From the NCBI GenBank assembly GCA_964035545.1, contig CAXIUT010000191.1, forward strand, positions 1 through 23,224: a stretch of 23,224 bases of DNA, read 5' to 3'. Below are positions 1 through 22,264 of this stretch, in pieces. How positions within the stretch are numbered: position 1 is the stretch's first letter; every line of letters begins with the position of its first letter. The notes under the pieces are model-generated. The model was not told where the DNA came from and did not search any database. It was given only the letters and a program-made list of their open reading frames with translations. This stretch comes from Bugula neritina (lineage: Eukaryota; Animalia; Bryozoa). Both the position numbers and the translations under genes were made by a program.

Positions 1-423
1 CGAGGCTGGCTAAAATCTGTTCGTACGAATACGCAATCTTGCAACGTACGAAACGCTGCCAGTATGCGCAAAATTATCGAGGTGTCAAAACGAGCTGCTT
101 CACTCGTTCTTCACATAAAGCCGATGTGTGGTCTGATGGCTTAAATTTGTGTGAAGATTTGCGGGTGAAAAAGAAAAACAGGTGTCGGGTTAGATACGGT
201 AGCCGCGTTTGAATTTTTGCTGCGCGAGGTGTGCCAGAGCATCTACGGCTTGGCCTTCATCTGCGTGGTAGCTGGTCTTGAGTTTGCCACCAGAGCCGAT
301 ACGTCCCCATTCGCGAACGAGGGTCGCGCCTCCAAAGAGATCGCGCTGCACGGTCATCAAATAGAAGCGGCGCATCTTGTGTATAGGGTCGATCCGGCGC
401 AGCTTAATGCGGCTTGGAAAAAC
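1..423. repeat. Terminal direct repeat, left copy (circularisation overlap)
   Basis: Sequence 1-~423 matches 22800-23224 apart from small indels and substitutions (e.g. gaagattt/gaagatttt, gaagcggcgc/gaagcgcgc). Confidence 0.95.
5..45 (+). promoter_or_regulatory. oriT right arm and putative nic site (CAATCTTG^C, between 41 and 42)
   Basis: 5-41 is the reverse complement of 22762-22795 (allowing three missing bases there). It ends in ATCTTG/C, which resembles the MOBP nic motif (RP4 TATCCTG/C), and lies just upstream of mobC on the circle. Confidence 0.65.
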
Positions 424-471
424 CTCAGCTTGTGCGGGATTATCTGAGCTAGGATAGTCTGCTGTGTTCAT
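190..471 (-). CDS. Stand-alone WGR domain protein
   Basis: RFYLMTVQRDLFGGATLVREWGRIG...KFKRGY matches the WGR domain pattern. Confidence 0.9.
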   Translation of the reverse strand: MNTADYPSSDNPAQAEVFPSRIKLRRIDPIHKMRRFYLMTVQRDLFGGATLVREWGRIGSGGKLKTSYHADEGQAVDALAHLAQQKFKRGYRI

Positions 472-548
472 GGATTTATCATATCCCAGCAGCGCAGATA
501 TGGAAGACTTCGAAGCTCAAATTTTCAAACTGCCCAACGATAGAATTA

Positions 549-1481
549 TCATTCTTCATCAGATCTTGCAGCTTGAATCTTCTGCATAAGCGACATTTGA
601 TCAAGTATAGCCATCAAGCGAGACGTCATCATATCAGGCTCCGAAACATCTGGTGGCGTATAGTTTGAATGGGCTGTGAGGAGCAGTCGCTCACGCTGAA
701 GCATTTGCTTGAAAGTAAGATCACCTTCAGAGAGAGCCTCGTAGTAATCTCGTCTCTCATCGAAGTTCGCATCTTCGCCAGGATCAGGTAACATTCCACC
801 AGTCCAGACCTCTGTTGCATGGCCCAGATAATCCAAAAGAAGATCCATCGCGAGCATCATGCGGTGCGCATCTTGTGGGCGATAAAAATTCCCAGGCTCG
901 CTACCATGAATTACGTAATGACGATTAAGTACCGAAAGGGAAAAATCCACACTGGGATCTTTCGTGTTGCGGTAGAGCCAGTTCTTCAAAAACTCGACTA
1001 ATCCATCGCGATAAGCCGCATGGGTGTTTCTAATATCTTCAGTTGCTTCCCACAGCGGAGCCTTGGAAAGTTTATCAATTAGCAGCGGAAAATTTTTACC
1101 TTCAACATCAAGGTATGAGCGCAAAATTCCTTCAAAGGCTGTGAGCATCAACAAAATGGACGCTGCATACTCTCGCTTATAAAACGAGAAAACACCCATC
1201 TCGACAATATGAGCAAATTTACTGAAGTGCTCGGTTTTCATACCCCTCCAAACAAGTCGCGCACGAAAATTTGGATGAAACACCACATCCATCATGCTCA
1301 TGTACAAGAGCTTTTCTGCTTCTCGGCGCTCGCCATCCGTTTGGGGCGAGCTTGCTTCAATTTGGTCGATTGCTCTGACAATTTTCTGATAATCCGACCC
1401 GATCATATAGGTCGGCGCAAACCAGCCAAACTTAGAAAGCCTGCGTGTTAAATCACGGTGATGTTCTGGCCAGTTTTCCAA
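549..1481 (-). CDS. Hypothetical protein with HEPN-like motifs
   Basis: 310-aa ORF (TTG start, 5 nt after the H-NS stop). Contains helix YAASILLMLTAFEGILR and an Rx4H motif, NRHYVIHG. Confidence 0.6.
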   Translation of the reverse strand: MENWPEHHRDLTRRLSKFGWFAPTYMIGSDYQKIVRAIDQIEASSPQTDGERREAEKLLYMSMMDVVFHPNFRARLVWRGMKTEHFSKFAHIVEMGVFSFYKREYAASILLMLTAFEGILRSYLDVEGKNFPLLIDKLSKAPLWEATEDIRNTHAAYRDGLVEFLKNWLYRNTKDPSVDFSLSVLNRHYVIHGSEPGNFYRPQDAHRMMLAMDLLLDYLGHATEVWTGGMLPDPGEDANFDERRDYYEALSEGDLTFKQMLQRERLLLTAHSNYTPPDVSEPDMMTSRLMAILDQMSLMQKIQAARSDEE

Positions 1482-1486
1482 GAGCG

Positions 1487-1792
1487 CTAAATCGCAAACG
1501 TCTCGATATCTTCACCCCGCTCAATCGCTTCAACTATCCATTGGGGTCTGCGCCCCCTACCCGTCCAAGTCATTTCAGCATTTTCTGGGTGGCGATATTT
1601 TGGCGCACTCACGGCCTTCGACTTCTTGCCTTTTCCAACAAGCTCACTGAGCGTAAAGCCCATCTCCTTGGCTTGGGCTTCGAGCTGTTCGCGCGCCTGC
1701 GAAACGCGGCGTTCTTCAAAAGAGGTGATCGCTTTTTCAACGTCTTTTCTGAGCTTCTTCAGCTCCGCAAGCGGCATATCGTTTAAGTTCAT
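1487..1792 (-). CDS. hns: H-NS family nucleoid-associated protein (HvrA/Spb-like)
   Basis: C-terminal PKYRHPENAEMTWTGRGRRPQW signature and an N-terminal coiled coil. ATG 1792 follows AGGAG, so it is preferred over the ORF-track start at 1846. Confidence 0.93.
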   Translation of the reverse strand: MNLNDMPLAELKKLRKDVEKAITSFEERRVSQAREQLEAQAKEMGFTLSELVGKGKKSKAVSAPKYRHPENAEMTWTGRGRRPQWIVEAIERGEDIETFAI

Positions 1793-1856
1793 TTTAAGAT
1801 CTCCTGAATTTGCAAAGGCCTTAACAGCAAGAACCACAGGCGACAAGAAATGAGAC

Positions 1857-2614: not shown

Positions 2615-3550
2615 ATGCGCGCTGACCAAGCCAGAACTATCCCGATTGACCGCTACCTGAATGCTCAAGGTATCAAGCCTGCGCGCGCTCGTCTGGGTGG
2701 GCGCGAGCTTTGGTATTCTAGTCCTCTGCGCCAGGGAGATGAGACACCTTCGTTCAAAATCGATACGCTCAAAAACCTCTGGTACGATCATGGGCTTGGA
2801 GAAGGTGGGAACATAATCGACCTGGTCACGCATCTCTCTGCGTGTGATGTGCGAGACGCCTTGCGTCACCTCGAACGCACCGGCCTCTATAGTCTTGCTG
2901 GCAATACTGGGTACTCGCCTACTCTGCCATCAGGAAATTATGCCAGCTCAGGATCTTCTAAATCTGCGGGTGAAAAAGAAAAGCAGCTTAAGAACAGCGC
3001 GTTTCAACTCGTCTCAAAAAGCGCGCTGACACATCCTGCCCTGCTGAATTATCTCAGTGGGCGCGGGATCGACCTTGATATAGCCCGTAAATATGCCTCT
3101 CAGGTCGATTTTAAGGCCCCTCAGAGCGGCGGAACTTACTTTGGGGTGGGTTATCCTGCTGGTGAGGGTTTTGAGGTGTGTAACGCGCTGTTTAAGGGCT
3201 TTGTCGGAATCGGCAAAGCTCCGAGCTTTCACAAAGGCACTCAGAGTAACAAGCTCCTGGTCTTCGAAGGCTTCATAGATTTTCTCAGCTACCTGACCAT
3301 GAAAGGCGTTAAAATCGCTGATGGAGATGTTCTTGTGCTGAACTCAACGGCGTTCAAAGCGAGAGCTTTGCCCCATGTGACCAACCCGCAGTACGAAGAA
3401 ATCCAGCTTTTCTTAGATAACGATGATGCTGGCAGTGCTGTCACGAAGTTCATTTGCGAAGCGGATTGCGCGGGAACAGTTTCTGACATGCGCCAACACT
3501 ACGCGACCCACGCGGATCTGAACGACTGGCACACAGGTCGCAAGCTGTAA
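2615..3550 (+). CDS. DnaG-like plasmid primase (CHC2-like N-terminus + toprim)
   Basis: N-terminal WYSSPLR..ETPSFKID..KNLWYDHGLGEGGNIIDLV; toprim motifs VFEGFIDFLSY and FLDNDDAG. Confidence 0.88.
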   Translation: MRADQARTIPIDRYLNAQGIKPARARLGGRELWYSSPLRQGDETPSFKIDTLKNLWYDHGLGEGGNIIDLVTHLSACDVRDALRHLERTGLYSLAGNTGYSPTLPSGNYASSGSSKSAGEKEKQLKNSAFQLVSKSALTHPALLNYLSGRGIDLDIARKYASQVDFKAPQSGGTYFGVGYPAGEGFEVCNALFKGFVGIGKAPSFHKGTQSNKLLVFEGFIDFLSYLTMKGVKIADGDVLVLNSTAFKARALPHVTNPQYEEIQLFLDNDDAGSAVTKFICEADCAGTVSDMRQHYATHADLNDWHTGRKL

Positions 3551-3687
3551 CTAGGTTTCTCTTTTTCACCCTCTGAAAAACTAAAAATAAGAAAAGCAAC
3601 ATTCAACGACATAAGGCTGTAGGCCGTTGTTGTTGTTGTTTAATAATACAACTCTTTAATAAGTTTAGAGCTCTAAAAATGGCTTTG

Positions 3688-3700: not shown

Positions 3701-3710
3701 AAGGGTGCTA

Positions 3711-4041
3711 GGTGAGAAGATTTGTGAAATCAGGTGAGGAAATTTGTGAACTTGGAGGGCGAATAGGTGAGGAAATTTGTGAAGTTAAGTGAGAGAATTT
3801 GTGAAGAGTTTAAACCACCCCTAGGAGCCCTGTAATACGCTGATAAACAATAATAAAAATATATTCCTCTAACGTTAGCCACATCTTTAGGTGAGAGAAT
3901 TTGTGAAGTGAGGAGTGAGATCGTATTCTGATATGTTTTCCTGCGCTTTGGTAAGCCAATCGCGTACATCTAGAGCCTTTAAGGTGAGAAGATTTGTGAA
4001 GCTTAGTAGAGCGGGTATTCCAAGGTGAGAGAATTTGTGAA
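3711..4041 (+). repeat. Iteron origin (oriV): seven 18-bp direct repeats RGTGAGRRRATTTGTGAA
   Basis: Copies start at 3711, 3733, 3766, 3788, 3890, 3983 and 4024, with an AT-rich stretch at ~3843-3865. They lie directly upstream of rep. Confidence 0.92.
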
Positions 4042-4064
4042 GTTGGTGAGCGGTATAGTAAAAA

Positions 4065-4135
4065 GGTGAGAGATAAGTTTGACTCTTCTCACCTATAATT
4101 ATAATGGTGAGAAGTTCTAGCAAGAAATTCTCACC
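4065..4135. promoter_or_regulatory. rep promoter/operator with inverted half-iterons
   Basis: GGTGAGA 4065, TCTCACC 4087-4093, GGTGAGAA 4106 and TTCTCACC 4128-4135 interleave with TTGACT (4079) and TATAAT (4094, 4100). Confidence 0.75.
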
Positions 4136-5495
4136 CATGGCAGTTACAAGCAATAAGTCGACAAAAAATGTCGTTCCAAAATCCTCTACCGAGATCGTAA
4201 GGAAGAACGTTTCTGCCGTGCATATCGGTGCGCGCCTATCTCTCATGCAGCGTAAGCTGGTGAACGCGATGCTGCTCAACGCCTATGATACTTTGGTCGT
4301 TGAGGACACCCATAGCGTAAACGTAAGTCTGCTGATGGAAATGATTGGTTTTGATAGCCGAAACCAGGAACACCTTAAATCAGCCATTAGAGGTCTTACA
4401 CAGAAAAGCGTTGAGTGGGACATAATGGAAGACGACGGGACACAGGTCTGGGAAGTCTCCACCCTGCTCTCGTATGCCAGTATTCGCAAAGGTGTTTGCA
4501 CGTATCGCTATGACAAGAGCCTTGCTGAAAAGCTAAGAAACCCAGATATTTACGCGAAAATTAGTCTGAGCGTTGTGCGAGAGATCCGCAGCGTTCACGC
4601 ACTTGTCTTGTACGAAAATTGCTATCGCTATGTGAATATAGGCCATACTCCAAAGTGGGACATTGATGTCTTCAGAAAGCTCATGGGGGTCGATACCGCT
4701 GTAAGTTATAAGCAATTCAAGGTGCTTAAACGCGATGTGATTACCCCTGCTATCAAAGAGATAAACAAGGTTTCGAACATTCAAATTGAGCTTGAAACGG
4801 TGATGAAAGGTCGGACGGTCGTTGCGGTGCAATTCATCATAAGGCCGAATAAACAGCTCGCCTTGCTCGGGCTCGAACTGGAAGATGATGTGACCTCAAG
4901 CAGAGCTTATAAAGCTCTCATCGAGTGTAAGATTGGGAAAAAGTGGGCGTATGATCTCGTTGAAGAACACGGCGAAGAGTATGTTCTTGAGAAAATTGAA
5001 CTTACCGATGCGCGGATGCGTGAAGGGAAGATCAAGTCTTCAAAAGCAGCATTCCTTCGTGCCGCCTTACAGGACGATTATCATAGTGATGTAGCGGAGA
5101 AGAGGCGACAGAGAGACGTGGCTGATGCAAATCGAAACGCTCGCCTTAAGCTTGAGGCAGAACTAGCGGCAGCGAAAAAGAACCTCAAAAAGCTGGAGAA
5201 GATGTATCGTGAAGCGTGCTTGGACCTCGTAACACAAGAGATTGAAAATCTCGACGATGAACAACGTGCATCAACAGAGGCAGCGTTCCGGTCTTCCCTA
5301 TCCAGCAAAATTTATACGGATGACTTTGTAAGATCGAGCTGGGCTGGGCGCTTGATCTTCACCGATGTGTATCAGTTCTGGGAAAAGCGCGGCGTAAGCT
5401 TTCCTGAACCTGATGAGATGATTGCGGATGGCGGTTCTCGAACAACCTCCCAAGAACGTTCGCGGATAAAGGAACTCGAGAGCCAGCTCATGTGA
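4104..5495 (+). CDS. repB: Rep_3 (RepB-type) replication initiator
   Basis: LSLMQRKLVNAMLL, ALVLYENCYRY and YKQFKVLKRDVITPAIKEIN are winged-helix Rep_3 motifs, and the gene is adjacent to iterons. The true start may be ATG 4137. Confidence 0.9.
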   Translation: MVRSSSKKFSPMAVTSNKSTKNVVPKSSTEIVRKNVSAVHIGARLSLMQRKLVNAMLLNAYDTLVVEDTHSVNVSLLMEMIGFDSRNQEHLKSAIRGLTQKSVEWDIMEDDGTQVWEVSTLLSYASIRKGVCTYRYDKSLAEKLRNPDIYAKISLSVVREIRSVHALVLYENCYRYVNIGHTPKWDIDVFRKLMGVDTAVSYKQFKVLKRDVITPAIKEINKVSNIQIELETVMKGRTVVAVQFIIRPNKQLALLGLELEDDVTSSRAYKALIECKIGKKWAYDLVEEHGEEYVLEKIELTDARMREGKIKSSKAAFLRAALQDDYHSDVAEKRRQRDVADANRNARLKLEAELAAAKKNLKKLEKMYREACLDLVTQEIENLDDEQRASTEAAFRSSLSSKIYTDDFVRSSWAGRLIFTDVYQFWEKRGVSFPEPDEMIADGGSRTTSQERSRIKELESQLM

Positions 5496-5631: not shown

Positions 5632-6249
5632 ATGTCTAAAACAAAAATAGCAGTGTATAACGAAAAGGGCCGAGTTGGGAAAACCCCTCTCTCGCTCGAG
5701 ATAGTCCTTCGCTTGGGCTATAACTATGCAACCAACCAGAACAGGCCGCGCAAGGATATCGAAGATATTATCCCAGATGGAGAGTTCTTGCAGGTCGGCC
5801 CAAATGAAGCTTTCCCTCAGTTAGACGATGATTTTCCTGTGGTTTTCGACTTGGCTGGTGAGCTTGTAGGCTACGAGCGAAGTATCGTCTCGGCGCTTGA
5901 GCAAGTTGATCTCATCATAGTGCCAGTTGTGAATGAGGCAGATGCTATTATGGGAACAGCGTATGCCATCACCGAGATTAAGACGCTGGATACTATCACG
6001 GCTGATTTCGTGATAGTGGCGAACATGCTCAAGAAGCCCGCTGAAGCCGAAGAAGTTGCGGCTCAGCTCATACCAATGATTGGTGAGGAAATTCCAATTT
6101 TGCCGATCAGGTACTCAAAGGCGTTCGATAGAATTCTGTCAAAGGGAACGTCTATCCGTGATCTAGTCAAGCAAGGCGGACTCAATAAGTGGAGCTTCAG
6201 CAATGTGGCCGCCGAGATTGATGAACTGATGTCCTATATAAGTAAGTAA
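5632..6249 (+). CDS. parA: ParA-family partition ATPase (type Ib-like, short)
   Basis: Deviant Walker A NEKGRVGKT, Walker B VVFDLAG, plus VDLIIVPV and VIVANM. Confidence 0.85.
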   Translation: MSKTKIAVYNEKGRVGKTPLSLEIVLRLGYNYATNQNRPRKDIEDIIPDGEFLQVGPNEAFPQLDDDFPVVFDLAGELVGYERSIVSALEQVDLIIVPVVNEADAIMGTAYAITEIKTLDTITADFVIVANMLKKPAEAEEVAAQLIPMIGEEIPILPIRYSKAFDRILSKGTSIRDLVKQGGLNKWSFSNVAAEIDELMSYISK

Positions 6250-7311: not shown

Positions 7312-7907
7312 ACTTGAACGTGCTTGTGATTAAGCACCTCCCGCTTTTCCGTAAGGGCTTGACGGACGATTTGGAACGCCGAGGACAAAAACAAACCTGC
7401 CATGATTGTCGCAACGATGAGATCAGGCCAACCGCTCGCCGTTCCCCATACGCCAAGGGCGGCAAACATAACCGCCACGTTGCCAATGGCATCGTTGCGT
7501 GAACATAGCCAAACTGAACGCACGTTGGCATCGCCATCTTTGTAACGCACCAACAGAAGCACGCTAGCCAGATTGGTCAATAGCGCCAGAAAACCAACAA
7601 AGCCCATAATTTCTGCCGTTGGCACTCCAACGTAGAAGACCCGATACACGGTTGATCCCAAGACCCACAAACCCATCAAAAACAAACTTATGCCTTTGAA
7701 CAGTGCGGCGTTAGTCCGTGCGCGCAGTGAAGCTCCGATAACAGCAAGCGAAATTCCATAAGTGAGTGCGTCGCCTGCAAAGTCTAGTGCGTCTGCTTGC
7801 AACGCTTGTGATTTTGCCAAATGTCCTGCCGTCATCTCCACGAAAAACATAATCGCGTTAAGGGCTATGACGATCCAGAGCCGTCGTTTGTAATCGTTTG
7901 AAACACC
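7308..7907 (-). pseudogene. CDF-family cation (Co/Zn/Cd) transporter, 5'-truncated by IS30
   Basis: SQALQADALDF and SVWLCSRNDAIGN motifs. The frame continues upstream of Met 7850 as GVSNDYKRRLWIVIALNAI up to the IS end at 7908, with no native start codon. Confidence 0.8.
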
Positions 7908-9025: not shown

Positions 9026-9038
9026 TTCCTGGAGCCTA

Positions 9039-11365: not shown

Positions 11366-11760
11366 ACAGATATCCTAAAATTAACAAAACTCATTGCGGC
11401 TCCTATGAGCACGCCGATCAAACCCAAGAAAAGATCCATCCAATCAAACGTGCCAAAATTCGAATAGTTACTGATAGCGTCTGGGGTAATGCTATCCAAC
11501 CGCCCCTTCATTTCAGGATGTTGTGATACTTCGAACAAAGTAACGATTAGTCCTACTAAAGCTCCTGAAAAGGTTACATCTTTTACGCCTCTATATGGAT
11601 AAGCTAGCAGGTATGTAAAAAAGAGAGCGTGCGAGAATGCTGGTAAGGACTGCAACAATAACCCTTCACTGACACCCAACCACGCGCGGATTGGATATAT
11701 TGCGCTTCCCATCAAAAACATACAAACAGCAAGTGTTGCCAGAGCTATCTTTACGTTCAT
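11362..11760 (-). CDS. Small membrane protein, VanZ/DUF2809-like
   Basis: Four hydrophobic segments with SLPAFSH, FEVSQ and GTFDWMDL motifs. ATGA overlaps with both neighbours. Confidence 0.65.
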   Translation of the reverse strand: MNVKIALATLAVCMFLMGSAIYPIRAWLGVSEGLLLQSLPAFSHALFFTYLLAYPYRGVKDVTFSGALVGLIVTLFEVSQHPEMKGRLDSITPDAISNYSNFGTFDWMDLFLGLIGVLIGAAMSFVNFRISV

Positions 11761-14700
11761 AAGAACATGAAGACATCTGCGTCGATCTGACTGGTAGTTA
11801 AGCCATAGAAGAGGATACTTGTGCCTTCTGCGTTGAAGACTGCGCCATCCGCACTGTCGCTCATGAAAGATGTAACATTTGAAGCGTTCACGGTTGTAAA
11901 CTCCAAAAGTCTGAGAGCATCGTCTCCATTTCCAAAATCACTACCCGAAACGACGACGCTATATCCACTTGTGTCGTTGAAAACTACATTCTCTACATTG
12001 AACGTGCCAATGGTATTATCGCCCTCGTTTGGCTTGAAGATAAACGTATCCGCTCCTCGTCCCCCCATAAGGAAATCATTACCTGCCCCCGCAATGAGTA
12101 TGTCCGAGCCTGCGAAAATACCGTTACTTGCTTCACCGCGAATTACATCATTGCCATTTCCACCATCGAGCGTATCAGCTTGAAAACCACCCAATAGAAG
12201 ATCTGAGTCTTCGCCGCCTGACGTGTGATTGATGCCTAGTTTCGACACGATCTTATCGTGTCCTTGCTGTCCTGATACTGTTTGGCTTTGAAGCGAGCTG
12301 ATGATCAAATCATCTGCGGCACTACCATAGACCGTATCAGAATTTTGCTGACCAAGAACACTGAGCACCTCAGAGATGAAGATGTTGTTCGCCTCATCCA
12401 CTTCATCCTCGTCATTATCGCTATCCAGCTGAAGCACGACGCGCCCCGATCCTTCTTGCAGATCAGATGGTGCGAAGAAATTGAGAGTAATGTCTGACTT
12501 TTCATTCCAAAGGAGCGGATTCACTTCCACTTTTCCGAGAAGGACAGAGTCACTGTCGAGTGTTCCGTCGTCAGTCAAGTAGGCGTTGACGGCAATTACT
12601 GATGAGGTTGACCCAATTTCAATATCAAATGGTGAGAAGCTGATGGGTGCATCGCCTCTGTTAAGGGCGCTAAACCCAAAGCTGAAATCTTCCCCTGCGA
12701 CAATCGAAGTCGGGATAGAGGCCTCTCCATCAAACCGAAGATCAGGCTGTGGGCTGTCTTTTACAATGACGTAGTGAGAAACGAGTGAAAGCTGTTCGCT
12801 ATCGTCAGATGAGCGAAGCTCCGTGAGCACGTAGTGCCCGCCAAGAGTACTATCGAGATCGATCTCTACGCGTGATTGGTAGTTCTGGTTTTGGCCTTGA
12901 GTCATTGAAGCAAGAACTGCTGATGTAAGAAGTTTATCTCCTTCATCCAGCTCATCATTTTCAGAAAGGTATGTACGGATAATTTCGCCGCCAGGCGTTA
13001 TAGTTGGGCTGAAGTTCTCATAGCTCACACCAAAATACAAAGTTCCCCCAAGATACGGGAAGTCTTCGCCGCCCCAGCCTGTTGCCCTGATGTCCACGAC
13101 TGGAGCTGGCTGCACAGTTACTGCGTGAGCGGTCTCAACTAGAAGCGCATTATCATCCGCAACAACGCGATAGATGAGGTTTTGGAGCCCTTCTTCATTG
13201 TCTTCGGGCGTATACTGGTAATCTACGCGATGGCTTTCACCGGCTTCTATGACGGGCAAAATGAGTGATATGACCTCACGATCACCCCCATCTTTTGAAC
13301 CATCAGCAGACAGAAAAATTTCTACGCGCTCTGTGCCGCTACTGGCCGCGCCTCCTGAGTTCGTGAATACAACAAACGCGTTTTGCTGCTCTCCTACAGT
13401 GAGATCAACAGTTTCACTGCGACCTTGGTATTCCAAGAAAGCTTCAGTGGGAGGCGCAACATCATCGTTGGTGATCGTAGTGTGAGCTATTGCCTTCAGA
13501 GGATCAATCTTGGCGGTTCCATCTGGCGAGCTTAAGCCGATTGAGAGAACCTCGTCTGGCGCAACTATGTCATCGCCGTCTACTAAAAGTGTTATGGTCC
13601 GGCTGGCTGTGTCGCCATCAGCGAAAGTTACCGATCCTGAACGATTTCCAGCTCCGTCGGTGATAGAGCTACGCCCTGAAAGCACCGACCACTCAACGGT
13701 CTGTGCACCTTGGCTACCTCCTGCACGTGAAATCTCAAACGGAATTTCTGTTTGCTCTCCCGCACTTCCTTCAAAAACTTCTTGGGATTGTTCGGTAATG
13801 CGAATGAGGCCAGCGCCACCTGTTCCAACAAAAACTGAAGCATAAGCAATGTTGTTGCCTTCATCGGCCTCTTCCACAGTTTCAGCATGATCTGCTTTGA
13901 TGCCTATGAAATATTCACCTAGCCCAAATACATACCCATACCAACCTTCGGTTGCTTCAACGGCTCCAGCTTCCAAGCTTGGAAAGTAAGGTTCGATGAA
14001 TACCCTTTCACTCTCATCGAACGTGGTATCGCTCGAGATATACATCGCAACAGAATAAGCACCTGAAGCTGATTGGCCGCGATTGAAGACGTCAAAGTCG
14101 AAATAGAATTCTTCTCCAAGGTCTGGATCTACAGTGGTGATAATGAGGTTTTCTACTGATAGATCTGCGGGTCCAAGATCTTTTGGTACCAGTGTCATCT
14201 GCGCAGAGGCGATATTGTTGGCTTCGTTTGTCTCATCCCAGCGATGAGCAGAATCCACCTCGCCAAAGACGGTGTAGGTGTGACCAGGCTCCAAATCACC
14301 AGTTGTAATGTAAACCGTCGAAGAGTTATTGGCAGATCGAGATCTGTCTGAAACTTCAACGTCATCAGAGTTCCCATAAACATCATCATAGGAAACGGTG
14401 ACCGTTACGCGATGAAGATTGTCTGGCGAGTCTGTTAGGTTTTTGGTTTTGTAGAGTAGAGCGAGTGTCCCACCCTTTTCGGTATCCGTTGCGCCATAAA
14501 GATTGAATGCAGAGAACACGTAGTCTTGCAGTGGAGCAGCGGGGGGAGGGTCTTGAATAGTAAGTTTGCGTCCTGAAGAAATATTGTCCCCTAACTGGGC
14601 CTCGGCTCCAGCGCTGGCTGAATTAGCGCGCGCGAAGAAATAATATTCACTTCCTTGAGCAAATGAACTTGTAATCGAAGCGGGAACAGTGACCGAAACC

Positions 14701-16175
14701 TCTCGTGTGTCACCTCCTGCAATATTGATATCTTGCGACCCAACTACGACTGCATTACTCAATGAAAACGTTGGTGAGCTAGAGTAGTAAAAAGTGGTCT
14801 GCGTCATTCCTGTCGCTTCATCACCATCGTTCTTAATCCGTGCAGTCAGCGTAATAGGGGCGCTTTGTTCGATCAGGCTATTATCTAGCCAGAGATCTAC
14901 AATGCGTTGGTTCGGTGGCGTACTGTCGGGTTCCCCAGGATTTCCGCCTGGATCGGCGGCTTCGGGTTCAATTTGTATGAAAAAGGAAAAGCGATTGTTG
15001 TCTTCATTAGAGCCTTCATCTGTACGATCCTGCACGTCTGCCGCTAGGACCACCTCATAGGTTCCAGGTGTAATATCCTCTGGGATCATGAAGCTTGGCG
15101 AGGTTAGTTGTTGCGCTTCACCTCCACGGAGAATTTTTGTCAAACCAGATTTAAAGCCTGAGCCAATTTCGGATGCAGTACCAAATGCCCAGAACGATAT
15201 GGTCGAGCTAGTCGCACCTTGGTTGACTACTTCGTAGTCGAAAGAAACTTCGTCTCCAGGCTTGAAAACCCGCGAGAATGTTGCGTTCTCTGAAACAGCC
15301 TCGTTTTCAAAAAATACGTTATCGATGATAAGATCGGCGGGGCCCGTATCGGGTGGATCTACAACGACAGGAGGATCGGTTTCATCCTGAGGAAACGAAA
15401 TCTGCAAATCGAACGTTTCACGCTGCGTGATATTCTCGCCTGATACAACGATGTAGTAACCTTGGTCCGGGGTATAGAACCAGTCTACATGCTCATCCTG
15501 TGTTCCAGGGTTTCGAGACTGAATACCTTGGCCCGCAATAGGGCGTCCCTGGTAGTCTAACACTTCTAGATCGAGCTCTCCCGTAAGTCCCAAGAGATCG
15601 ACATTGATTGGGCCGCTACCAGCCGTTTCGATATAAAAAATCCGGTGATACACACCGTCTTCAAGCTCTACGGCGTAGGTCTTATACTGTGAAACAAAGC
15701 TAAGTTCGTCATAGCCCTCATCATTATCAATCGTTCCCGTTGTAGAAAGAGTCGAACCTCCTTGCGCGGAAACAGCACCTTGGATGTCAGAAATCGTTAG
15801 GCTTACCTTATCTCCGTCTTTGTTTTCTGGCCGTCTATCACCTTTGATCGCAACCTTAATCTGCTCCTTGTGATACCCATCCGACAAGCTCTCGAACGGT
15901 ATTGTTACCGTAAGATTATTCAGCTCATGAAAATCATCATCGGTATCATTAGATGTGTTCACAACAAAGGTCACATCTTCGTACGCAACACCTCGAACTT
16001 CGACATCAAAGGTTAGGTAATTTTCACCGTCATAGTCGCCTTCGCTCACGGAAGAACCGTTCAGATAAAGCTTCGGCTTCGGTGCAAGACTGGTGCCACC
16101 GGAGAACTCAACTAAATCGTGATTATCTTCATAAGTTGCTGAAGCATATACTAACTTTACCTCTCGCCCATTCAA
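11757..16175 (-). CDS. Large RTX/T1SS-type protein: Calx-beta x2, PPC-like, ~7 CARDB-like repeats, Ca-binding nonapeptides
   Basis: Repeated xDLxV..VxNxG..ExxExNN units; GSVTFADGDTASRTITLLVDGDD; GGNGND, AGAGND and GGRGAD repeats; C-terminus DADVFMFL; no N-terminal signal peptide. Probably the C-terminal part of a longer gene. Confidence 0.88.
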   Translation of the reverse strand: MNGREVKLVYASATYEDNHDLVEFSGGTSLAPKPKLYLNGSSVSEGDYDGENYLTFDVEVRGVAYEDVTFVVNTSNDTDDDFHELNNLTVTIPFESLSDGYHKEQIKVAIKGDRRPENKDGDKVSLTISDIQGAVSAQGGSTLSTTGTIDNDEGYDELSFVSQYKTYAVELEDGVYHRIFYIETAGSGPINVDLLGLTGELDLEVLDYQGRPIAGQGIQSRNPGTQDEHVDWFYTPDQGYYIVVSGENITQRETFDLQISFPQDETDPPVVVDPPDTGPADLIIDNVFFENEAVSENATFSRVFKPGDEVSFDYEVVNQGATSSTISFWAFGTASEIGSGFKSGLTKILRGGEAQQLTSPSFMIPEDITPGTYEVVLAADVQDRTDEGSNEDNNRFSFFIQIEPEAADPGGNPGEPDSTPPNQRIVDLWLDNSLIEQSAPITLTARIKNDGDEATGMTQTTFYYSSSPTFSLSNAVVVGSQDINIAGGDTREVSVTVPASITSSFAQGSEYYFFARANSASAGAEAQLGDNISSGRKLTIQDPPPAAPLQDYVFSAFNLYGATDTEKGGTLALLYKTKNLTDSPDNLHRVTVTVSYDDVYGNSDDVEVSDRSRSANNSSTVYITTGDLEPGHTYTVFGEVDSAHRWDETNEANNIASAQMTLVPKDLGPADLSVENLIITTVDPDLGEEFYFDFDVFNRGQSASGAYSVAMYISSDTTFDESERVFIEPYFPSLEAGAVEATEGWYGYVFGLGEYFIGIKADHAETVEEADEGNNIAYASVFVGTGGAGLIRITEQSQEVFEGSAGEQTEIPFEISRAGGSQGAQTVEWSVLSGRSSITDGAGNRSGSVTFADGDTASRTITLLVDGDDIVAPDEVLSIGLSSPDGTAKIDPLKAIAHTTITNDDVAPPTEAFLEYQGRSETVDLTVGEQQNAFVVFTNSGGAASSGTERVEIFLSADGSKDGGDREVISLILPVIEAGESHRVDYQYTPEDNEEGLQNLIYRVVADDNALLVETAHAVTVQPAPVVDIRATGWGGEDFPYLGGTLYFGVSYENFSPTITPGGEIIRTYLSENDELDEGDKLLTSAVLASMTQGQNQNYQSRVEIDLDSTLGGHYVLTELRSSDDSEQLSLVSHYVIVKDSPQPDLRFDGEASIPTSIVAGEDFSFGFSALNRGDAPISFSPFDIEIGSTSSVIAVNAYLTDDGTLDSDSVLLGKVEVNPLLWNEKSDITLNFFAPSDLQEGSGRVVLQLDSDNDEDEVDEANNIFISEVLSVLGQQNSDTVYGSAADDLIISSLQSQTVSGQQGHDKIVSKLGINHTSGGEDSDLLLGGFQADTLDGGNGNDVIRGEASNGIFAGSDILIAGAGNDFLMGGRGADTFIFKPNEGDNTIGTFNVENVVFNDTSGYSVVVSGSDFGNGDDALRLLEFTTVNASNVTSFMSDSADGAVFNAEGTSILFYGLTTSQIDADVFMFL

Positions 16176-16993
16176 CTTATCGATCCTTCCTCGAGTTTTG
16201 TACCGACCTGGAAGTGAAGATGTGCGCCACCTGTTACCCCTGATAGGCCAATCGTTCCGATTGCTTGCCCTTTTTGAACAAAGTCACCAATTTTAACTCC
16301 ACTATTATCGACTGAATTTTGTCCCAAATGTAGATACGAAGCGTAAAATTTCCGACCATCATCTGACACATGCAGGACTGTTATCCAGTTACCGAACTTA
16401 CCTGGGCCTTTGTCTGAATTAACACTGTTGTCAGTGCTTTGGGCGTCATCAAAATAGCCAACAACTAACCCATCGGCGGCGGCACGAACCGTCGTCCCAA
16501 CGGGTTGCGCAAAATCCCAAGCAGCGTCATCGTGTATCGTTGGTGTATCACCAATGTGACCGCTTGGCCCCTGAGATGTAATCTGTGGGTTCGCGACTTC
16601 GGAGCCGAAAGGGTAGTCAACCACAATCGGTGTCGTAGGATCATTCGCAACGTTGCCTAAAACAAAAATATCATCAAAAAAAACAACTCTTTGAATATTT
16701 TCTATTTGAGCAACTGTGGATCGATCTTCATGCTCTAAAGTTGGATATTCAAGGAACTCTCCAATACTGTACTTTTCCGAATTATCCTTAACAATTAGAG
16801 TGTTCGTGCCACCTACGCCATCAAATATTTTAAAGCTAGAACCCAAATAGAAAACATTGTCTGAGTTATCGCCATCAGAGTTCAACGTGTCTTTTATAAT
16901 TTCAAATTCACCATTCGAAAATGAGATTTCTTCCCATTCACCGCTTAGCTCAGGTCTAAAATAGCTGTTTACGTTAGAAATTCCATCAAACAA
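16172..16993 (-). CDS. M23-family metallopeptidase domain ORF (probable middle of fused toxin)
   Basis: HDDAAWDF, GTTVRAAADG, FGNWITVLH, YLHL and GAHLHF motifs, preceded by a degenerate RTX-like module (DGVGGTNTL...IENIQRVVFFD). Confidence 0.88.
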   Translation of the reverse strand: MFDGISNVNSYFRPELSGEWEEISFSNGEFEIIKDTLNSDGDNSDNVFYLGSSFKIFDGVGGTNTLIVKDNSEKYSIGEFLEYPTLEHEDRSTVAQIENIQRVVFFDDIFVLGNVANDPTTPIVVDYPFGSEVANPQITSQGPSGHIGDTPTIHDDAAWDFAQPVGTTVRAAADGLVVGYFDDAQSTDNSVNSDKGPGKFGNWITVLHVSDDGRKFYASYLHLGQNSVDNSGVKIGDFVQKGQAIGTIGLSGVTGGAHLHFQVGTKLEEGSIS

Positions 16994-17016
16994 ATTTTTG
17001 AAAATGCCCTCTGTTT

Positions 17017-18030
17017 TTACCCTACTTTTCCTTCAAAGTTTTCCGTCAACCAGCCATCAACGAAATTCAAACTAGCTGATATCGCGCCAATTGCATCACT
17101 GTCGGGAAAAGCAATATCTGCAAGATCGACAGAAGATTTTAGAAATTCATAATTTTCATATAATTCGTATATAGAATAAGCTATTGCGAACGGCCCACCA
17201 ATAGCACGAGCAAGTAAACCCGCCCCTACTTCAAGAGCGGACACCCCCAAAAAAGAGGTCAGCGCATTCGCGTCAATATCCAAATTAGAATTTTCGACAA
17301 ACTGGCGCAACTCATTAGCAGTGAGTTCTTCTTTCTTTACAATATCTGCAGCTAATTTACCAAGAGACGCGACACTTAAACCAATCGCAGCAGCACCAAC
17401 TGTTCCAGAAGATTTATCTAAATCAAATCCGGAATGTATCTTTGCCTTTATGTCAGGATCAATATTGTGAAATGTTTGCCCAGACGTGATTTTAGAAAAA
17501 TTATCACTATCCAGATATTTGGAAAAAGGTTTTCCAATCTTTTTGAAATTTGGATCAGTAGTAACCAAGTACAAATTTGGGAGTTCTTTTACTTCATCAA
17601 ATATCTTAAAGTGATCAAAATCAATAGAAGGCGCTAAAGCCTGCTTTACACCTCTCAACTCTCCAATCAAATTAGATTTTGCTTGTGCTGGAGTAAGCCC
17701 CTCGGCGTCCATCTTTACTTGAACACCCAAGATATATGATCGCAAGAAAATAGTGTATTCAGGTGAGTGACTACCATGCTTTGCTAGCGAGTATTGACCC
17801 TTCTCAATACCTAGCAACGCGTCTTCTATAGGTAACGGAACTCCATTATATTCAGAATCAAAATCAAAATCGATCTTATCGAGAAAGCTTATGATATCTT
17901 CATCATAGTATAAGCTCGTAGGGTCTTTTAAGCTTTGAGGGATAACATGGTGGGCTTGCCACTTACCCAGCTTGAGAAGCTCGCTATCAGAATATGAATT
18001 CTCAAGTGATTTTCGCAAAGCATCGGCCAC
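17017..18030 (-). CDS. AHH (HNH/EndoVII-fold) nuclease toxin domain + Gly/Ala-rich hydrophobic helices
   Basis: WQAHHVIP...FDFDSEYNGVPLP...KHGSHSPEY matches the AHH pattern. The GTG start follows GGAG, 1 nt after the upstream stop. Confidence 0.82.
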   Translation of the reverse strand: MADALRKSLENSYSDSELLKLGKWQAHHVIPQSLKDPTSLYYDEDIISFLDKIDFDFDSEYNGVPLPIEDALLGIEKGQYSLAKHGSHSPEYTIFLRSYILGVQVKMDAEGLTPAQAKSNLIGELRGVKQALAPSIDFDHFKIFDEVKELPNLYLVTTDPNFKKIGKPFSKYLDSDNFSKITSGQTFHNIDPDIKAKIHSGFDLDKSSGTVGAAAIGLSVASLGKLAADIVKKEELTANELRQFVENSNLDIDANALTSFLGVSALEVGAGLLARAIGGPFAIAYSIYELYENYEFLKSSVDLADIAFPDSDAIGAISASLNFVDGWLTENFEGKVG

Positions 18031-18031
18031 A

Positions 18032-18653
18032 TTAAATCTCCACGCATTTATTTACTAACAGACATTGAATTGCCGTTTCATTTAGTATTTCGAATAAATT
18101 GTCGGAAATATACAGCATGTCCCTACCCAGTACCGTTGAGTCCATCCAAATATCAAAACTTGATATCTTTGATTTGTGAACGGATAGCGGTATATTCAAA
18201 TTGTTATGATCAATTTTTCCATAAACTTTCCCATCGACACTTTGGCATTCCACAAAACGATCTCTGCACTCATTAGAAATCGCCTTCACAAACTTTTCAA
18301 TTCTTATCAAAAAATATTCTGAATTCTGACGCACTTTTACTATCAAGTACACTTGAATAAATGGGCACCAAGTCAACTTTGTTTTTTGCATTTTTTAATA
18401 GAAAATTCGCCACAATATCGTCACAAAACCAATAGTGACCACGTCCAAAAAAATTTGGCAACCACTCCTGTGTCGAGAACTTCACTTTTACTTCGTAGCG
18501 ATCTAATTTGGGAAATTCACCAAGAAATATGGAGCGGCGTGATTCTGTGCTAAAAAATTCCTTCGGGCAATCAACTATCTCGACCCACGCCTTTTCACCC
18601 AGCGGATATAGATCAAAGGATCTTGGAATTGTATGGGAAATTTGCTTTGTCAT
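18032..18653 (-). CDS. Imm11/DUF1629-like immunity protein (split by one frameshift at ~18310-18390)
   Basis: Overlapping ORFs 18297-18653 and 18032-18391 join to ~207 aa with LPNFF..WFCDD..FL..VDLVPI / YFLIRI..DIW..LYISDNLFEIL. The gene is adjacent to an AHH domain. Confidence 0.65.
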
Positions 18654-18739
18654 AATATTTAATTTTTCAAAAATACTTATTACTTTTACCTTAGTGAATT
18701 AAATATAAATGCAAGCGCAAAAAAAATTAATTCGAAAAC

Positions 18740-19484
18740 TTAAGAAAACCCGTATGCATTTATCACTTCAATAAATTCTACCTGCGATCCACCAACATCA
18801 GGATGGTTCTTTTTAACCTTGCGTCTATACGCTGCCTTTAACTCATCAGGGCTATAGCTCCTTGACGGATCAAGTCCCAAAATCATCAAGCAACGCGTTC
18901 TTTCATCTTCAGCAGGCGATGGATTCTTTGCAGCACTTCCTCGACCTTTTTGAGGATTGGTAGCGGCTCTGTTCTTTCGTGTCACCCGCTTTGTCCCTTT
19001 TATCTTGAGTCGCCTTAGCCTTCCGCCGAAACCCTCTAGCCTCATCCTGCCAACCAGCACGGGCACTCTGCCTCTGTTCTTGCGGCTTATACGCTTGGCG
19101 CCGCGTTTCCTCTCTCAGCTCATGTTCCCGCTCTTCCAGTTCTTGCTCACGCCTACGGATGTCCTCAAACGCGCTGCGATACCGAAACGCATAGATCAAA
19201 TCTCCGAGGTTCCCCGCCCATGCCAGCGCTGAGAAAAAAAGTCCCCACATGCGCCACGCCCAACACGAAAATGCCGCCCAGGATGGGGCCCAGCATCGCG
19301 GACGGGTTCGTAGAGAAACAGACCAAAATAAAGAATGAGCAGGATTTTCCACCAGGACAGGCGCTTGGTGAGCTTGCCTAGATATTTGCCAGCGAGGAAT
19401 AGAACTATCAGCAGAAACAGAAACGCCGGATTGAATAGAGCTGTCAGGGCAAGGCGCCTGAAGATCCTCAAAGTAGTCTATCAT
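18740..19484 (-). CDS. Membrane-anchored J-domain (DnaJ-like) protein, frameshifted in assembly
   Basis: The pieces give N-terminal TM helices (FLFLLIVLFLAG, WWKILLILYFGLFLY), a coiled coil, and C-terminal ILGL..ELKAAYRRKVKKNHPDVGG with HPD. Confidence 0.78.
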
Positions 19485-20942
19485 TGCAGCGGCACCCTTT
19501 GATTTTCGCTGCGCCTTGCTGTTTACTGAGATGCGCTGCGCCGTAGCGTTTCGGAACGCGGGACAACTTGCGGTGCTGGAAATAGGGTGTGGTTTCAATA
19601 ATTGCAGGGTTTTTGTTTGCACTGACCAAAAGCGCCTGCGTGTCTCCCATTCTTCGGATCGCATCAGCGTTGAGCAGATTGTACTCGTGCCGCTGCTGCG
19701 TGATGTCTTCGATCTTATCCCCTTCGAACCTCGATGACCTTTCCGGCTATGGCCTCAAAGAAACGCGCCGTCTCTTGGTCTGAGCCGCTATAGGCAAGAT
19801 AGGTGGTAAAGCCGCCTTGGATGCTCTGCGCGTAGTCTCGACCATAACGGGCAGAAAGCTGGCTCAGGGATTGCAGCACAATCGATAGGCTCACTTTGTA
19901 ACCCCTGATCGTGTTCGCCACGGATACGAAGGACGGTATCGTGGAGTGACCAAATTCATCATAGAGAATGTAGAGCGGAAGTGTAGATTTCGTGGGCATC
20001 TTTCGCATTGAAGCGTTGAACACGCTGCGGAAAAACACGCTCGTCCAAAATCCATAATATTCAGCCAAATGCGGCGGCGTTATAAAAAACACAGCCGTCT
20101 TTTCATGGCGGATGGATTCCAGGCTGAAGCTGCTACTGGCGGTCAGCTCGATCAAGTTCTTGTTGGTGAAGGCTTTCAGGGCCGTCAGCGCTGTAAGAGC
20201 GAAGCTCTGCACCGCGTTTGGGTTTCCCGTCACGGCTCCCTTCCATTCTTCCCACAGGCTTGAATCCTCTGGGTTGCTCGGATTGTAGGCCCACTTGATT
20301 ACAAAGTCGTCCAGGGGTGAGCCGTCCTGCCCAAAATTCTGAAGGCAGTGATACAAATTCCCCAGGGTGTAATAACTGGGGTCACTGTATCCTGCGCGCT
20401 GCAAAAGTTTGAGGCAAGATAGAGATCATGCGCGTTGCGCCGTGTTCCAAAACTCATCCTTGGAACTACCTGACCCCTGCTTTGATAAGAATTTCCGCAA
20501 TCTGCTCGATTTCAATATCGTCCTTGGCTTCAAGCAGAGGATTGAAGTTTGAGCTGCTGGCAAGATCTTCAGGATTTATCGCAATGACCTTGAAGCCACG
20601 TGATTGCAGATAGCCTGAAGTTTCCGCGAACACCTCGCCTTGGGGTCATTCACCACAATGGAGCAGTTTCGTTTCGCGCGATCCAAAACCGACGGTATAA
20701 TATACCGACTGGTTTTCCCCGCTCCCACGCGGGCAATGACCGCTACGTTTTGAAAACTCTCACGCTCAGGACAGCCGGCCTTCATTACCATCCATGAGCA
20801 GGCCTGTGTTGCGTGAAGAAAGCAGGGTGCTGGTTTCTGAACCTGTGAGCATACGCGCGCCGCCTTGTCGCTTCAGGAACTTCCCAAAGAGTAGGGCATA
20901 TCCCGCGTTCTTACTCAACTCACTCAAAAATCTTCCCAGCAC
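19481..20942 (-). CDS. VirD4/TraG-like type IV coupling protein, frameshifted in assembly
   Basis: Walker A ARVGAGKT, IVVNDPK, Walker B ILYDEFG and SIVLQSLSQLSARYG are spread over several frames. Boundaries are approximate. Confidence 0.85.
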
Positions 20943-21102
20943 CTTCAGCCTCTCTCAGATGTTCACGTGTCTTGCCATGTTGTTTGGTTTTTAGATGCTT
21001 GAGTAAATGCAGATAACGGTTCTGGATGCCTCGCAAGCTTGCCTGAGTGGCAAGGCGCACGGTGGCGGTCAGCTCGCGCAGGATGGCTTGGACGCTCTGA
21101 CC

Positions 21103-22264
21103 TCACCTGCTGCGTCCACCTTTGCTCTGTCCATCCTTGCCTGTAATCGTGCGGGCTACTTCGTCCTTGGTTTCTCTCAGCTCATCCATACTGCGTTTCC
21201 AAGCATTCTGGATAGGTGAGAGGCCTTCGCCTTGCTCTTCAGTTCGACCATCTTCGGATTTTACTCCAGAAGGATCAGGAACGACGCGTTCCCCCTCATC
21301 CACGATCTGTACCTTCTGCGGTTCTCCTGGCGCACTTCCCATATCTCGCTCCTGTGTTTGCTCTTCTTGCGTACCATCTGGCGCTTTGCGCTGCGTATCA
21401 TGCTCGGTCTCACGACTTCGCTTCCCAGCGTCTTTTTCTTTTTCACCCGCAGCCTTTTTCTCAGCTCAACGCTTCTCTCATCCTGACGTTCAACATCTAC
21501 CCCAGAGAGCCGGATTTCGATCTGATCGGCCACCTGCAAATCCAGCGTCTTCAGGCGATGCTTTTTGCCTGTCTCCAGATCCACCACGCCGACGGTCTTC
21601 CCTCGAACATAGAGGTCGAGGCCCTCATGGCCGAGCGCTGCGAGAAGGCTGTCACGGTCTTCGCTGGCCTCATAAGCGCTGCCGATACGCTGCAAGATGT
21701 CTTCACGCTTCGGACGCTGCCCTGTGCGGCGTTCTAGCTCGGCTTCCCTCTTGCCGCGTCCACGCTCTGAGCGTTTTCCAATCGCGAGTTTCTGTTCCAG
21801 CTCAGGGTAGTCTGAAGCACGTGCGCTTCGAGCTTCACTTGGATGTCTCGAAACTGGTGTTTGGTGAGACGCTGGCGTTTCACCTCGCCTGAGCGATTGG
21901 CAGAGATCATCAGGTGCATATGGTAGGAATGATCCTTGTCCTGGTGCAGGCCACCATAGACCAGATTGTCCGGGCAACGCGCCGCGATGTATTCACGCGC
22001 GATCTCATGCAGGCGCTCTTTCTGCTCTTGCGCGCTGAGGCCCTTGCGCGGGTTATCGAGATGATTTCGTGAAACAGGTAGGTGCCGTTTTTGCGTTTCT
22101 GCAATAAACTCCGCATTGCGCTCATACTCATCTCTGATGCTGCGGTGGTCACGTCCTAGCAGATTGTGCCGCAGCGTGAATTCTTCCTGCCCCTCTTCGC
22201 GGTCAATATACTCCAAGAGCTGACCAAAGCTTGGCACCTTGCGGCTCATGGATTTGATTATCAT
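21103..22264 (-). CDS. MOBP-type relaxase, frameshifted in assembly
   Basis: Motif I (LLEYI), motif II (YLFHEIIS) and HUH motif III (LHQDKDHSYHMHLMISAN), followed by a charged C-terminal tail. Confidence 0.88.

Follow-up and report, generated by a model that had tools for sequence, protein, structure and literature searches.

In plasmids of the IncQ group (RSF1010/R1162), a plasmid-encoded primase works from dedicated sites on both strands: the single-strand initiation (ssi) sites ssiA and ssiB, hairpin sites of about 40 nucleotides (nt) that both lie inside the origin of vegetative replication (oriV), are used by RepB', a protein that is not known to be of the Toprim/DnaG type and is also made fused to the relaxase MobA. 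In primases of the T7/DnaG type, the N-terminal domain reads a short template word, such as GTC or CTG, the 3' nucleotide of which is left uncopied, and synthesis starts with a purine; DnaG primers are about 11 nt long, and the words, of 3–5 nt, occur everywhere in a genome. The single-strand origins (sso) of rolling-circle plasmids and of ICEBs1, as well as the ssi signals of the G4 and phiX174 types on conjugative plasmids, are folded structures of 100–300 nt that are used by the host RNA polymerase, DnaG or the PriA primosome. In ColE2, Rep, a member of an unrelated protein family, is itself the primase, binds one fixed origin next to rep and makes a unique short primer; we know of no copies of the ColE2 site inside genes. 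Outside a few model plasmids, the first priming of the transferred strand in a new host is poorly understood. The present analysis deals with an 18-nt motif, TGCGGGTGAAAAAGAAAA, that is dispersed over a 23,224-nt stretch of DNA (contig CAXIUT010000191.1 of the Bugula neritina assembly GCA_964035545.1, positions 1 to 23,224; hereafter the window), a mobilisable replicon with genes for a predicted primase (2615–3550, + strand), a relaxase and a replication initiator. Tentatively, and at somewhat less than even confidence, we suggest that the primase of the element, an enzyme of the T7/DnaG type, has in this 18-mer its cognate cis-acting initiation signal, that is, a linear site comparable to ssi and sso.

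The likeness to IncQ lies in a mobilisable replicon with its own primase and with candidate dedicated sites on both strands by the iterons, in the combination of primase and relaxase in one module, and in independence of host priming as the presumed benefit. The differences are that the enzyme here has the T7/DnaG fold and that the motif is an 18-nt linear word without a conserved hairpin, dispersed over the origin of transfer (oriT), oriV and the relaxase and primase genes; the comparison with ssiA and ssiB is one of their described features. With T7 gp4 and DnaG, the primase shares the fold, the two domains and the flexible linker, and the proposed use of the site, with an uncopied 3' part followed by a purine-started primer of about 11 nt, would be similar as well; here, however, 18 nt are kept, there are four sites per element, and all four zinc ligands have been lost. 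The resemblance to the sso and to the G4-type and phiX174-type ssi is in the strand-specific start of a complementary strand on single-stranded DNA, transferred or displaced, for which two of the copies (sites B and D below) are suitably placed, whereas the proposed user is the element's own enzyme, and a search of the whole window against Rfam at the gathering thresholds yielded no family. As in ColE2, the start by a plasmid enzyme would be tied to a defined sequence and not to a short word of general occurrence. In the literature searched, there was no paper with the 18-mer and nothing useful on PrmN1, on Bacteroides primases or on this primase family, and we know of no study of the template specificity of the family.

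A scan of the window identifies exact copies of the 18-mer at 160–177 (+), 2965–2982 (+), 21434–21451 (−) and 22960–22977 (+), and a near copy with three mismatches at 3557–3574 (−), which is the same as the 17/19 match at 3555–3573 reported by the first-pass annotation. The mean chance expectation is 0.05 matches, and five matches were obtained in none of 100 dinucleotide-preserving shuffles. The copy at 22960–22977 was absent from the first-pass list and is not independent, because it is a second view of the copy at 160 in the overlap of the contig ends: positions 1–424 repeat 22801–23224 at 94–100% identity, with homopolymer indels and with greater divergence in the first 30 nt or so. Given this 424-nt overlap, the window represents a circular contig of about 22.8 kb; the assembly is noisy and probably of long-read origin. 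The independent copies are thus three exact and one degenerate, and all four are where the first-pass annotation had located them.

Site C (160–177, +) is an exact, noncoding copy on the strand that is predicted to be transferred; it lies between genes, as originally described, 118 nt 3' of the predicted nick in the nic-type core and 12 nt past the stop codon of the opposite-strand WGR-domain gene. Site A (2965–2982, +) is an exact copy in sense orientation within the primase interdomain linker, where it encodes AGEKEK (residues 118–123). Site D (3555–3574, −) is the degenerate, noncoding copy; it starts 5 nt past the primase stop codon, again in agreement with the first description, and 135 nt ahead of the iterons, and retains the 11-nt purine core with one change (GAAAAAGAGAA), the G-rich 5' part being degenerate. 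Site B (21434–21451, −) is an exact copy in sense orientation in the C-terminal tail of the relaxase. The statement that both coding copies read AGEKEK is correct for site A; at site B, the open reading frame (ORF) of the window as assembled reads LRVKKK, and AGEKEK appears once a frameshift is allowed for, with the intact homologue in locus L061 as a guide that places the motif-bearing segment in the homologous frame. When the flanks of the copies were compared, similarity ended at about 19–25 nt, so that the motif is a discrete short element.

No near-identical plasmid was found in PLSDB, where the IS30 element is the sole DNA-level match of the window; its nearest relatives there by protein comparison are a 25.7-kb plasmid of Sulfitobacter (primase 53% identical, Rep 49%) and the Octadecabacter plasmid pOA238_118. 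A scan of 185,579 species genomes with the exact 18-mer yielded at least 120 loci, and the contigs with relatives of the window among the matches listed are labelled Sulfitobacter, Neomegalonema, a Flavobacteriaceae bin, a Gammaproteobacteria bin and Hyphomicrobiaceae. Two of these, L063 (uncultured Flavobacteriaceae) and L061 (Gammaproteobacteria), carry modules 56–94% identical to the primase, Rep, relaxase or coupling protein of the window; both group with Rhodobacterales plasmids and are probably mislabelled.

All four site classes recur at the same position and on the same strand in relatives, both plasmids and integrated elements, with about 40–55% protein identity, in flanks that are unrelated, so that the scan of related primase plasmids that had been proposed reveals conservation of the motif together with position and strand. 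Class A, in sense orientation in the primase linker, is present in 14 of the 14 primases of the alphaproteobacterial clade, including L124, L125, L127 and L128 (and L126), which were sampled without regard to the motif. Class B, in sense orientation in the relaxase tail, is found in seven other elements (L024, L053, L061, L063, L100, L111 and L121), and every intact relative reads (A/E)GEKEK. Class C is noncoding and lies between the nick and the first leading gene. Class D is noncoding and antisense, directly past the primase stop codon, in a conserved T-rich tract ahead of the iterons; equivalents are present in L053, L063, L119 and L127, and a copy about 650 nt beyond the primase gene in L092, all within this tract. 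Classes A–C keep a 19-mer, and class D keeps best the 11-nt purine core (GAAAAAGAAAA), which is exact in the relatives and has one change in the window, with the G-rich 5' end partly retained.

The sequence constraint was examined in a sample of primase loci collected independently of the motif by alignment of the Toprim half only, which comprises 80 metagenome and 80 IMG/VR loci (L124–L283). Some of the loci analysed in this work are bacterial contigs from human-gut metagenomes, and no human sequence was encountered. In the motif-independent sample, the motif is present in the linker of all five relatives with more than 52% identity and of one with 38%. In L124, L125, L127, L128 and L148, all 19 Glu and Lys codons within the motif end in A, compared with ratios of about 51:49 for GAA:GAG and AAA:AAG elsewhere in the same genes, and substitutions within the motif are nonsynonymous as often as synonymous. 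Depending on the clade, the CACCCGCA part is translated as HPQ or as SPA, and reverse-complementary copies encode unrelated peptides in different frames. The noncoding copies at kept positions, the frozen synonymous sites and the clade-dependent frames show that selection acts on the DNA, as had been supposed from the window itself. Conservation of the peptide only is ruled out by the noncoding copies, the antisense copies, the frame differences and the codon test. This is a clear case of a cis-acting DNA element inside coding sequence that is detectable through its frozen synonymous sites.

Beyond the close relatives, among the matches listed, 31 loci carry the motif within 8 kb of a homologue of the window primase, relaxase or coupling protein, and in about 27 it is located in or beside the primase gene. 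The primase-linked loci come from Pseudomonadota, Bacteroidota, Thermodesulfobacteriota and Campylobacterota; positions vary, both orientations are used, and nearly every element contains both. Thus, the tie between motif and primase suggested by the window is borne out, in that the motif follows this primase family through four phyla. In Chitinophagaceae, an antisense copy at residue ~92 and a sense copy at residue ~108 form an 18-bp inverted repeat with a 30-nt spacer in the linker coding region; in Telluribacter, a sense copy is followed within a few nucleotides by the primase start codon, and residue 90 marks an antisense copy; a Desulfuromonadaceae contig and a Sulfurimonas contig each have an exact antisense copy at residue ~85. 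The antisense copies overlap a peptide FSF, with CACCCGCA adjoining. Hyphomicrobiaceae contigs of 0.23–1.17 Mb, which look like integrated elements, carry the motif along with relaxase and primase genes. In a tree of 94 primase sequences, the motif carriers form at least three clusters, five by parsimony, with motif-less genes between them. The motif was not found on a Desulfotalea plasmid with a relaxase gene and a pseudogenised primase gene; given that the relaxase family has only two members in PLSDB, both accompanied by the primase, a comparison of relaxases with and without primase is uninformative.

The reading that the motif has no dedicated function, and is a conserved peptide (AGEKEK, or FSF in Bacteroidota), a recombination scar or a host-genome repeat, is extremely improbable. 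The genome scan did select for exact DNA, the FSF peptide is conserved in a fraction of the family, and there is one unrelated context, in four Hyphomicrobiaceae loci (L007, L013, L093 and L104), where the exact 18-mer is part of the intergenic spacer of a two-gene IS21-family element, with no link to primase or relaxase. These observations are set against the noncoding copies at kept positions, the synonymous sites frozen in the motif-independent sample and the unrelated peptides encoded by reverse-complementary copies. Furthermore, among the matches listed there are at most 1–4 copies per contig, always in mobile-element contexts, which leads to the rejection of a repeat spread through the host genome, be it a DNA uptake sequence, a Chi-like sequence or a repetitive extragenic palindromic element, and scans of IMG/VR with the 18-mer and with a variant one A shorter gave 1 + 4 matches, which is background only.

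In gut-type clades, a shorter form of the motif is discernible. In the clades that bear FSF, the second Phe is encoded by TTT in 61 of 61 cases (background 49%) and Ser by TCT in 57 of 61 (background 23%), and the following residue is R, Q, P or H, all with codons that begin with C, or else G. In the 300 nt that precede the start codon, the sense strand is enriched in the 9-mer AAAAGAAAA, with 49 matches in 129 loci compared with 2–23 for most 9-mers of equal composition. The contexts of this 9-mer are of at least eight distinct kinds, and in several of them the 5' flank is G-rich or an inverted complement adjoins. In many Bacteroidota, from several clades, a purine copy is located 13–57 nt before the primase start codon. 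When the primases are clustered at 60% identity, FSF is present in 8 of 35 clusters, and AAAAGAAAA is found near the 5' half of the gene in 9–10 of 35, compared with 2–6 for the controls. Because these cluster-level counts are modest, the short core is recurrent rather than universal, and the notion of a family-wide short core is weakened. In four gut-type loci (L145, L226, L228 and L229), repeated 12-mers (AAAGTGAAGTGA, direct or inverted) are present 90–200 nt upstream of the primase gene, and repeats containing TATATATA are also found between the preceding gene and the primase gene; this repeat region is possibly the oriT or the origin of these four elements.

The presence of both orientations in nearly every element and the inverted repeat in the Chitinophagaceae linker would also be compatible with base pairing between copies, in mRNA or in the transferred strand (2965 with 3557, 160 with 21434 in the window), for control of translation or stability or for joining of the ends of the transferred strand, given that each transcript, like the transferred strand, has a purine copy and a pyrimidine copy. 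Likewise, the arms in the L172 clade form a 9-bp hairpin, and the purine copy of Telluribacter abuts the start codon, its complement being at residue 90. Pairing would, however, allow covariation, yet the sequence is identical through phyla; the G-rich part, from which stability would come, is the very part that is degenerate at site D; the core shared by the gut clades amounts to just 9 A/T-rich pairs; local folds are not significant relative to shuffles; and the partners in the window are 0.6 and 1.5 kb apart. Such pairing therefore appears rather improbable.

The product of the gene at 2615–3550 (+), which harbours site A, appears to be a T7/DnaG-type two-domain primase, with a zinc-binding-domain fold and a compact Toprim catalytic domain. 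A search of the PDB by sequence returned spurious weak matches only, and a search by fold was therefore needed. An AlphaFold2 model built with 69 homologues (pLDDT, the predicted local distance difference test score, 90.8) shows two folded domains and a disordered linker (residues ~91–128) that contains AGEKEK, in line with the initial impression that the linker around the copy at 2965 is dispensable. Foldseek matches the model to Aquifex DnaG (zinc-binding domain and polymerase domain; 2au3, E value 5e-9), the T7 gp4 primase fragment (1nui), the zinc-binding domain of Bacillus DnaG (1d0q, root-mean-square deviation 3.2 Å) and T4 gp61. At the sequence level, the protein matches Pfam Toprim_2 (E value 1.4e-9) and, in part (residues 35–160), the NCBIfam dnaG family, and scores 21.2 with Pfam Zn_ribbon_DnaG, below the cut-off of 24.9. 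Among 69 sequences, the Toprim acidic residues E218 and D268 are invariant and D270 is nearly so. The four zinc ligands (CHC2 or C4) were not found in the N-terminal domain: the window protein has SPLR...YDHG where DnaG has CPFH...CFGC, and the family consensus likewise lacks Cys at these places. An ORF of 146 codons antisense to the primase N-terminus (2429–2869, −), with tblastn matches solely at the primase genes of relatives, is most likely no gene but a mere reflection of the conserved primase sequence on the other strand.

As for the partner of the motif, the H-NS and WGR genes are missing from many motif-bearing elements, and the primase is the sole protein common to all motif contexts, the IS21-family spacer loci being set aside as unrelated. 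The gene order around it varies: in Bacteroidota, the primase gene directly precedes a small gene and the gene of a MobA/VirD2 relaxase, all codirectional (43 loci), and in the alphaproteobacterial clade primase and relaxase are divergent across oriT. The first-pass annotation had offered, as an alternative, distal binding sites of Rep. In a version of this idea, the motif would be a distal half-site of the Rep3-family initiator, for copy-number control or looping, recognised through the common GGTGA: the iterons of the clade begin with AGGTG(A), the motif contains GGGTGA, and site D is 135 nt from the iterons. In the window, seven iterons (3709–4054, +) precede the Rep3-family initiator gene (4104–5495, +), and a comparison of six elements (the window, L053, L063, L119, L121 and L035) shows that the iterons have only the 5' AGGTG(A) in common; the 3' halves are plasmid-specific and track Rep, which is about 50% identical, whereas the 18-mer is invariant. 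No Rep3 match was obtained in the 8-kb loci of the motif-bearing Hyphomicrobiaceae contigs, and none was detected in the Bacteroidota elements. Because the iterons vary whereas the motif is constant and is also present in chromosomal elements in which Rep3 went undetected, a Rep site is unlikely; the alternative is disfavoured as originally phrased, an iteron-type Rep site is rejected on the iteron comparison, and the half-site version, for which the shared part is 5–6 nt only, is very improbable.

With regard to oriV, site D and the Telluribacter copy abut iterons, and sites A, B and C are located elsewhere. The exact 18-mer of Telluribacter is flanked by a dense iteron array and by the primase ATG and adjoins the gene of an AAA_25/helix-turn-helix protein, a setting that parallels site D beside the Rep3 iterons; this layout of iterons, motif, primase and AAA_25/helix-turn-helix protein resembles the IncQ origin. 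Judged from these sequences, an association with the origin in two unrelated replicon types would count in favour of a role in priming. In the Telluribacter sp. locus L008, the region at ~4570–4990, directly upstream of the motif and the primase gene, consists of dense short repeats (TTGTCCCA and its complement, in both orientations) and looks like a plasmid origin with an IncQ-like layout.

The strand layout can be referred to transfer. A nic-type core (GCAATCTTG followed by C, 33–42, +), which we take to resemble the IncP/Ti-type nick sequence, is preceded by an inverted repeat (22777–22795 and 5–23) and places the predicted nick between 41 and 42. The core is present in 10 of the 10 relatives examined, between the relaxase gene and the oriT-side motif copy, always on the same strand as the purine reading of that copy, which follows 3' at 87–281 nt (871 nt in L063). 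As a rule, the relaxase gene enters the recipient last, and from this rule and the conserved core we take the transferred strand to be the + strand and the leading region to extend from 42 to about 3000, with its genes on the minus strand; the earlier supposition that the + strand is transferred from nt 42 is thus supported by the relatives. It follows that, on the transferred strand, the copies at 160 and 2965 are in the purine form of the motif, those at 3557 and 21434 in its pyrimidine complement, and, given the conservation of the nic core, that this layout relative to transfer is fixed in the clade. Two side observations concern this region. Between the relaxase start and the oriT inverted repeat, a small hairpin (22740–22761, +) contains an 11-nt partial motif copy (GGGGTGAAAAA) in its loop and stem, and this partial copy (22743–22753) was not conserved in the relatives examined. 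In L111 (3625–3671) and L121 (3583–3630), the complement of the oriT-side motif forms a T-run after the G+C-rich hairpin of a convergent gene, so that the copy there may double as the tail of an intrinsic terminator.

The preferred reading, priming by the element's own enzyme, would work as follows. On single-stranded DNA, the primase would read the pyrimidine-rich complement of the motif as template; its N-terminal ribbon domain would recognise the 3' part of the template, the complement of the G-rich TGCGGGT (ACCCGCA), which would not be copied. Synthesis would start opposite the C next to the recognised part and yield a purine primer, G-AAAAA-G-AAAA, of about 11 nt; it is this purine core that is retained most faithfully throughout the four site classes, including the degenerate class D. 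Sites D and B present the template form on the transferred (+) strand. Since B is near the end that enters last, a primer there could serve to copy the whole strand in the recipient, and from a primer at D, just past the primase gene, the leading region, which enters early, could be copied as far back as the nick. Sites C and A present the template form on the retained strand, and a primer at C, about 120 nt behind the nick, might start replacement synthesis in the donor. Sites A and D flank oriV and could serve vegetative replication. The copy in the tolerant primase linker would keep the enzyme and its site genetically linked.

Several observations weigh against this proposal. The 18-mer, with up to two edits, was not found in 154 of the 160 motif-independent primase loci; with six of 160 loci that have it and the short core in some 9–10 of 35 clusters, the family evidently does not need the exact site. 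Known DnaG and T7 primases recognise about 3–5 nt, not 18, and the priming model leaves the reason for the 18-nt length unexplained. The zinc ligands are absent although the name 'CHC2 zinc finger' implies them. The reversed template polarity also gives a coherent account, and sites A and D converge, with no obvious origin layout. DNA-parameter folding of 25 sites on both strands revealed no consistent hairpin at classes A–C (z mostly −3 to +1). The conserved synteny of the alphaproteobacterial clade reduces the four site positions to one observation, so that the original remark that the copies are placed around oriT and oriV stands as a description of this clade and fails as independent evidence. 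Finally, the purine copy 13–57 nt before the primase start codon in Bacteroidota fits control of primase expression equally well.

On the folding results, class D has a small stem of a T-run and an A-run only, and a classical ssi hairpin was accordingly not found at the 25 sites. Because the hairpin is missing and the enzyme fold differs, the motif would be ssi-like in the way it works without being a member of the IncQ ssi family.

Control of primase expression belongs to a broader possibility, namely that the motif is a duplex binding site, for the primase or another factor, with a regulatory or architectural role (e.g., primase autoregulation or relaxosome–replisome coupling) and no role in primer formation. 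A length of 18 bp is typical of protein sites, and the asymmetric motif occurs in inverted pairs, as do sites bridged by dimers, in addition to the upstream purine copies in several Bacteroidota clades. In the window, none of the predicted promoters overlaps any of the four sites, two of which lie within genes and two after stop codons, and this speaks against a classical operator in this plasmid; an operator overlapping a promoter was thus rejected. Moreover, the sites in the relaxase tail, at oriT and at oriV are ill-suited to control of primase expression, and no DNA-binding protein other than the primase is common to all motif-bearing elements. On balance, a duplex site of this kind is unlikely.

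The remaining genes of the window complete the picture of a small, mobilisable marine plasmid. The leading region comprises, all on the minus strand, the WGR-domain gene (190–471), an ORF for 310 amino acids (549–1481), an H-NS-like gene (1487–1846) and two small ORFs (1857–2480) with matches on Octadecabacter pOA238_118 to a ribbon-helix-helix protein and the protein encoded next to it (67–77% identity) and to a RelE/ParE toxin (about 33%); from these annotated homologues, the two ORFs, which adjoin the H-NS-like and WGR genes, are likely a toxin–antitoxin pair. Beyond the initiator gene, there is a ParA-like gene (5632–6249, +; weak match) and IS30 (7957–8958, −), detected by its PLSDB DNA match, within an IS30-family element (7902–9026) of which plasmids from Rhodobacterales, among them Phaeobacter and Sulfitobacter, carry copies with 72–81% identity. 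An ORF at 10421–11365 (−) contains about seven tandem copies of a 9-bp unit (11182–11271; CGGTTCCTG) that on the coding strand would encode a repeated three-residue peptide. A large ORF for 1472 amino acids (11757–16175, −) matches RTX-type calcium-binding repeats only, at residues ~1275–1400 and far below the family cut-offs, and is followed by an ORF similar to M23-type peptidases (16172–16993, −). The region at 16500–18900 has a G+C content of 0.37–0.40, compared with about 0.48 elsewhere, and the ORFs tested there have no family match; it is possibly acquired cargo. The genes of the coupling protein (~19500–20940, −, fragmented) and of the MobA/VirD2-type relaxase (21163–22674, −, with shifts near 21809 and ~21470) are each split into three frames (19498–22674, −) relative to the intact L061 homologues, to which they are 62–80% and 73–83% identical, respectively; the splits are due to errors of the assembly or to genuine decay of the genes.

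A function is inferred here from a comparative signal that is both strong and unexpected. The 18-mer thereby becomes a precise candidate substrate, the strands and positions of which are defined, and it may serve as a marker of this class of mobile elements in metagenomes. The primase family is abundant in marine Rhodobacterales plasmids, in the integrated elements of Hyphomicrobiaceae and in mobilisable elements of gut Bacteroidales. A further-reaching proposal, doubtful but worth stating, is that of a 'self-marking' primase: a widespread zinc-less T7/DnaG-like family that is encoded on conjugative and mobilisable elements, including the very common ones of human-gut Bacteroidales, would recognise a long polypurine/polypyrimidine word that is written into its own linker and beside oriT and oriV. 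Should this be so, the alphaproteobacterial 18-mer would be the best-defined form of the word, and other clades would have it as the TTTTCTTTT tract under FSF, combined with the purine copy ahead of the start codon. The enzyme and its start site would then move as one unit through phyla, freeing the element from host priming.

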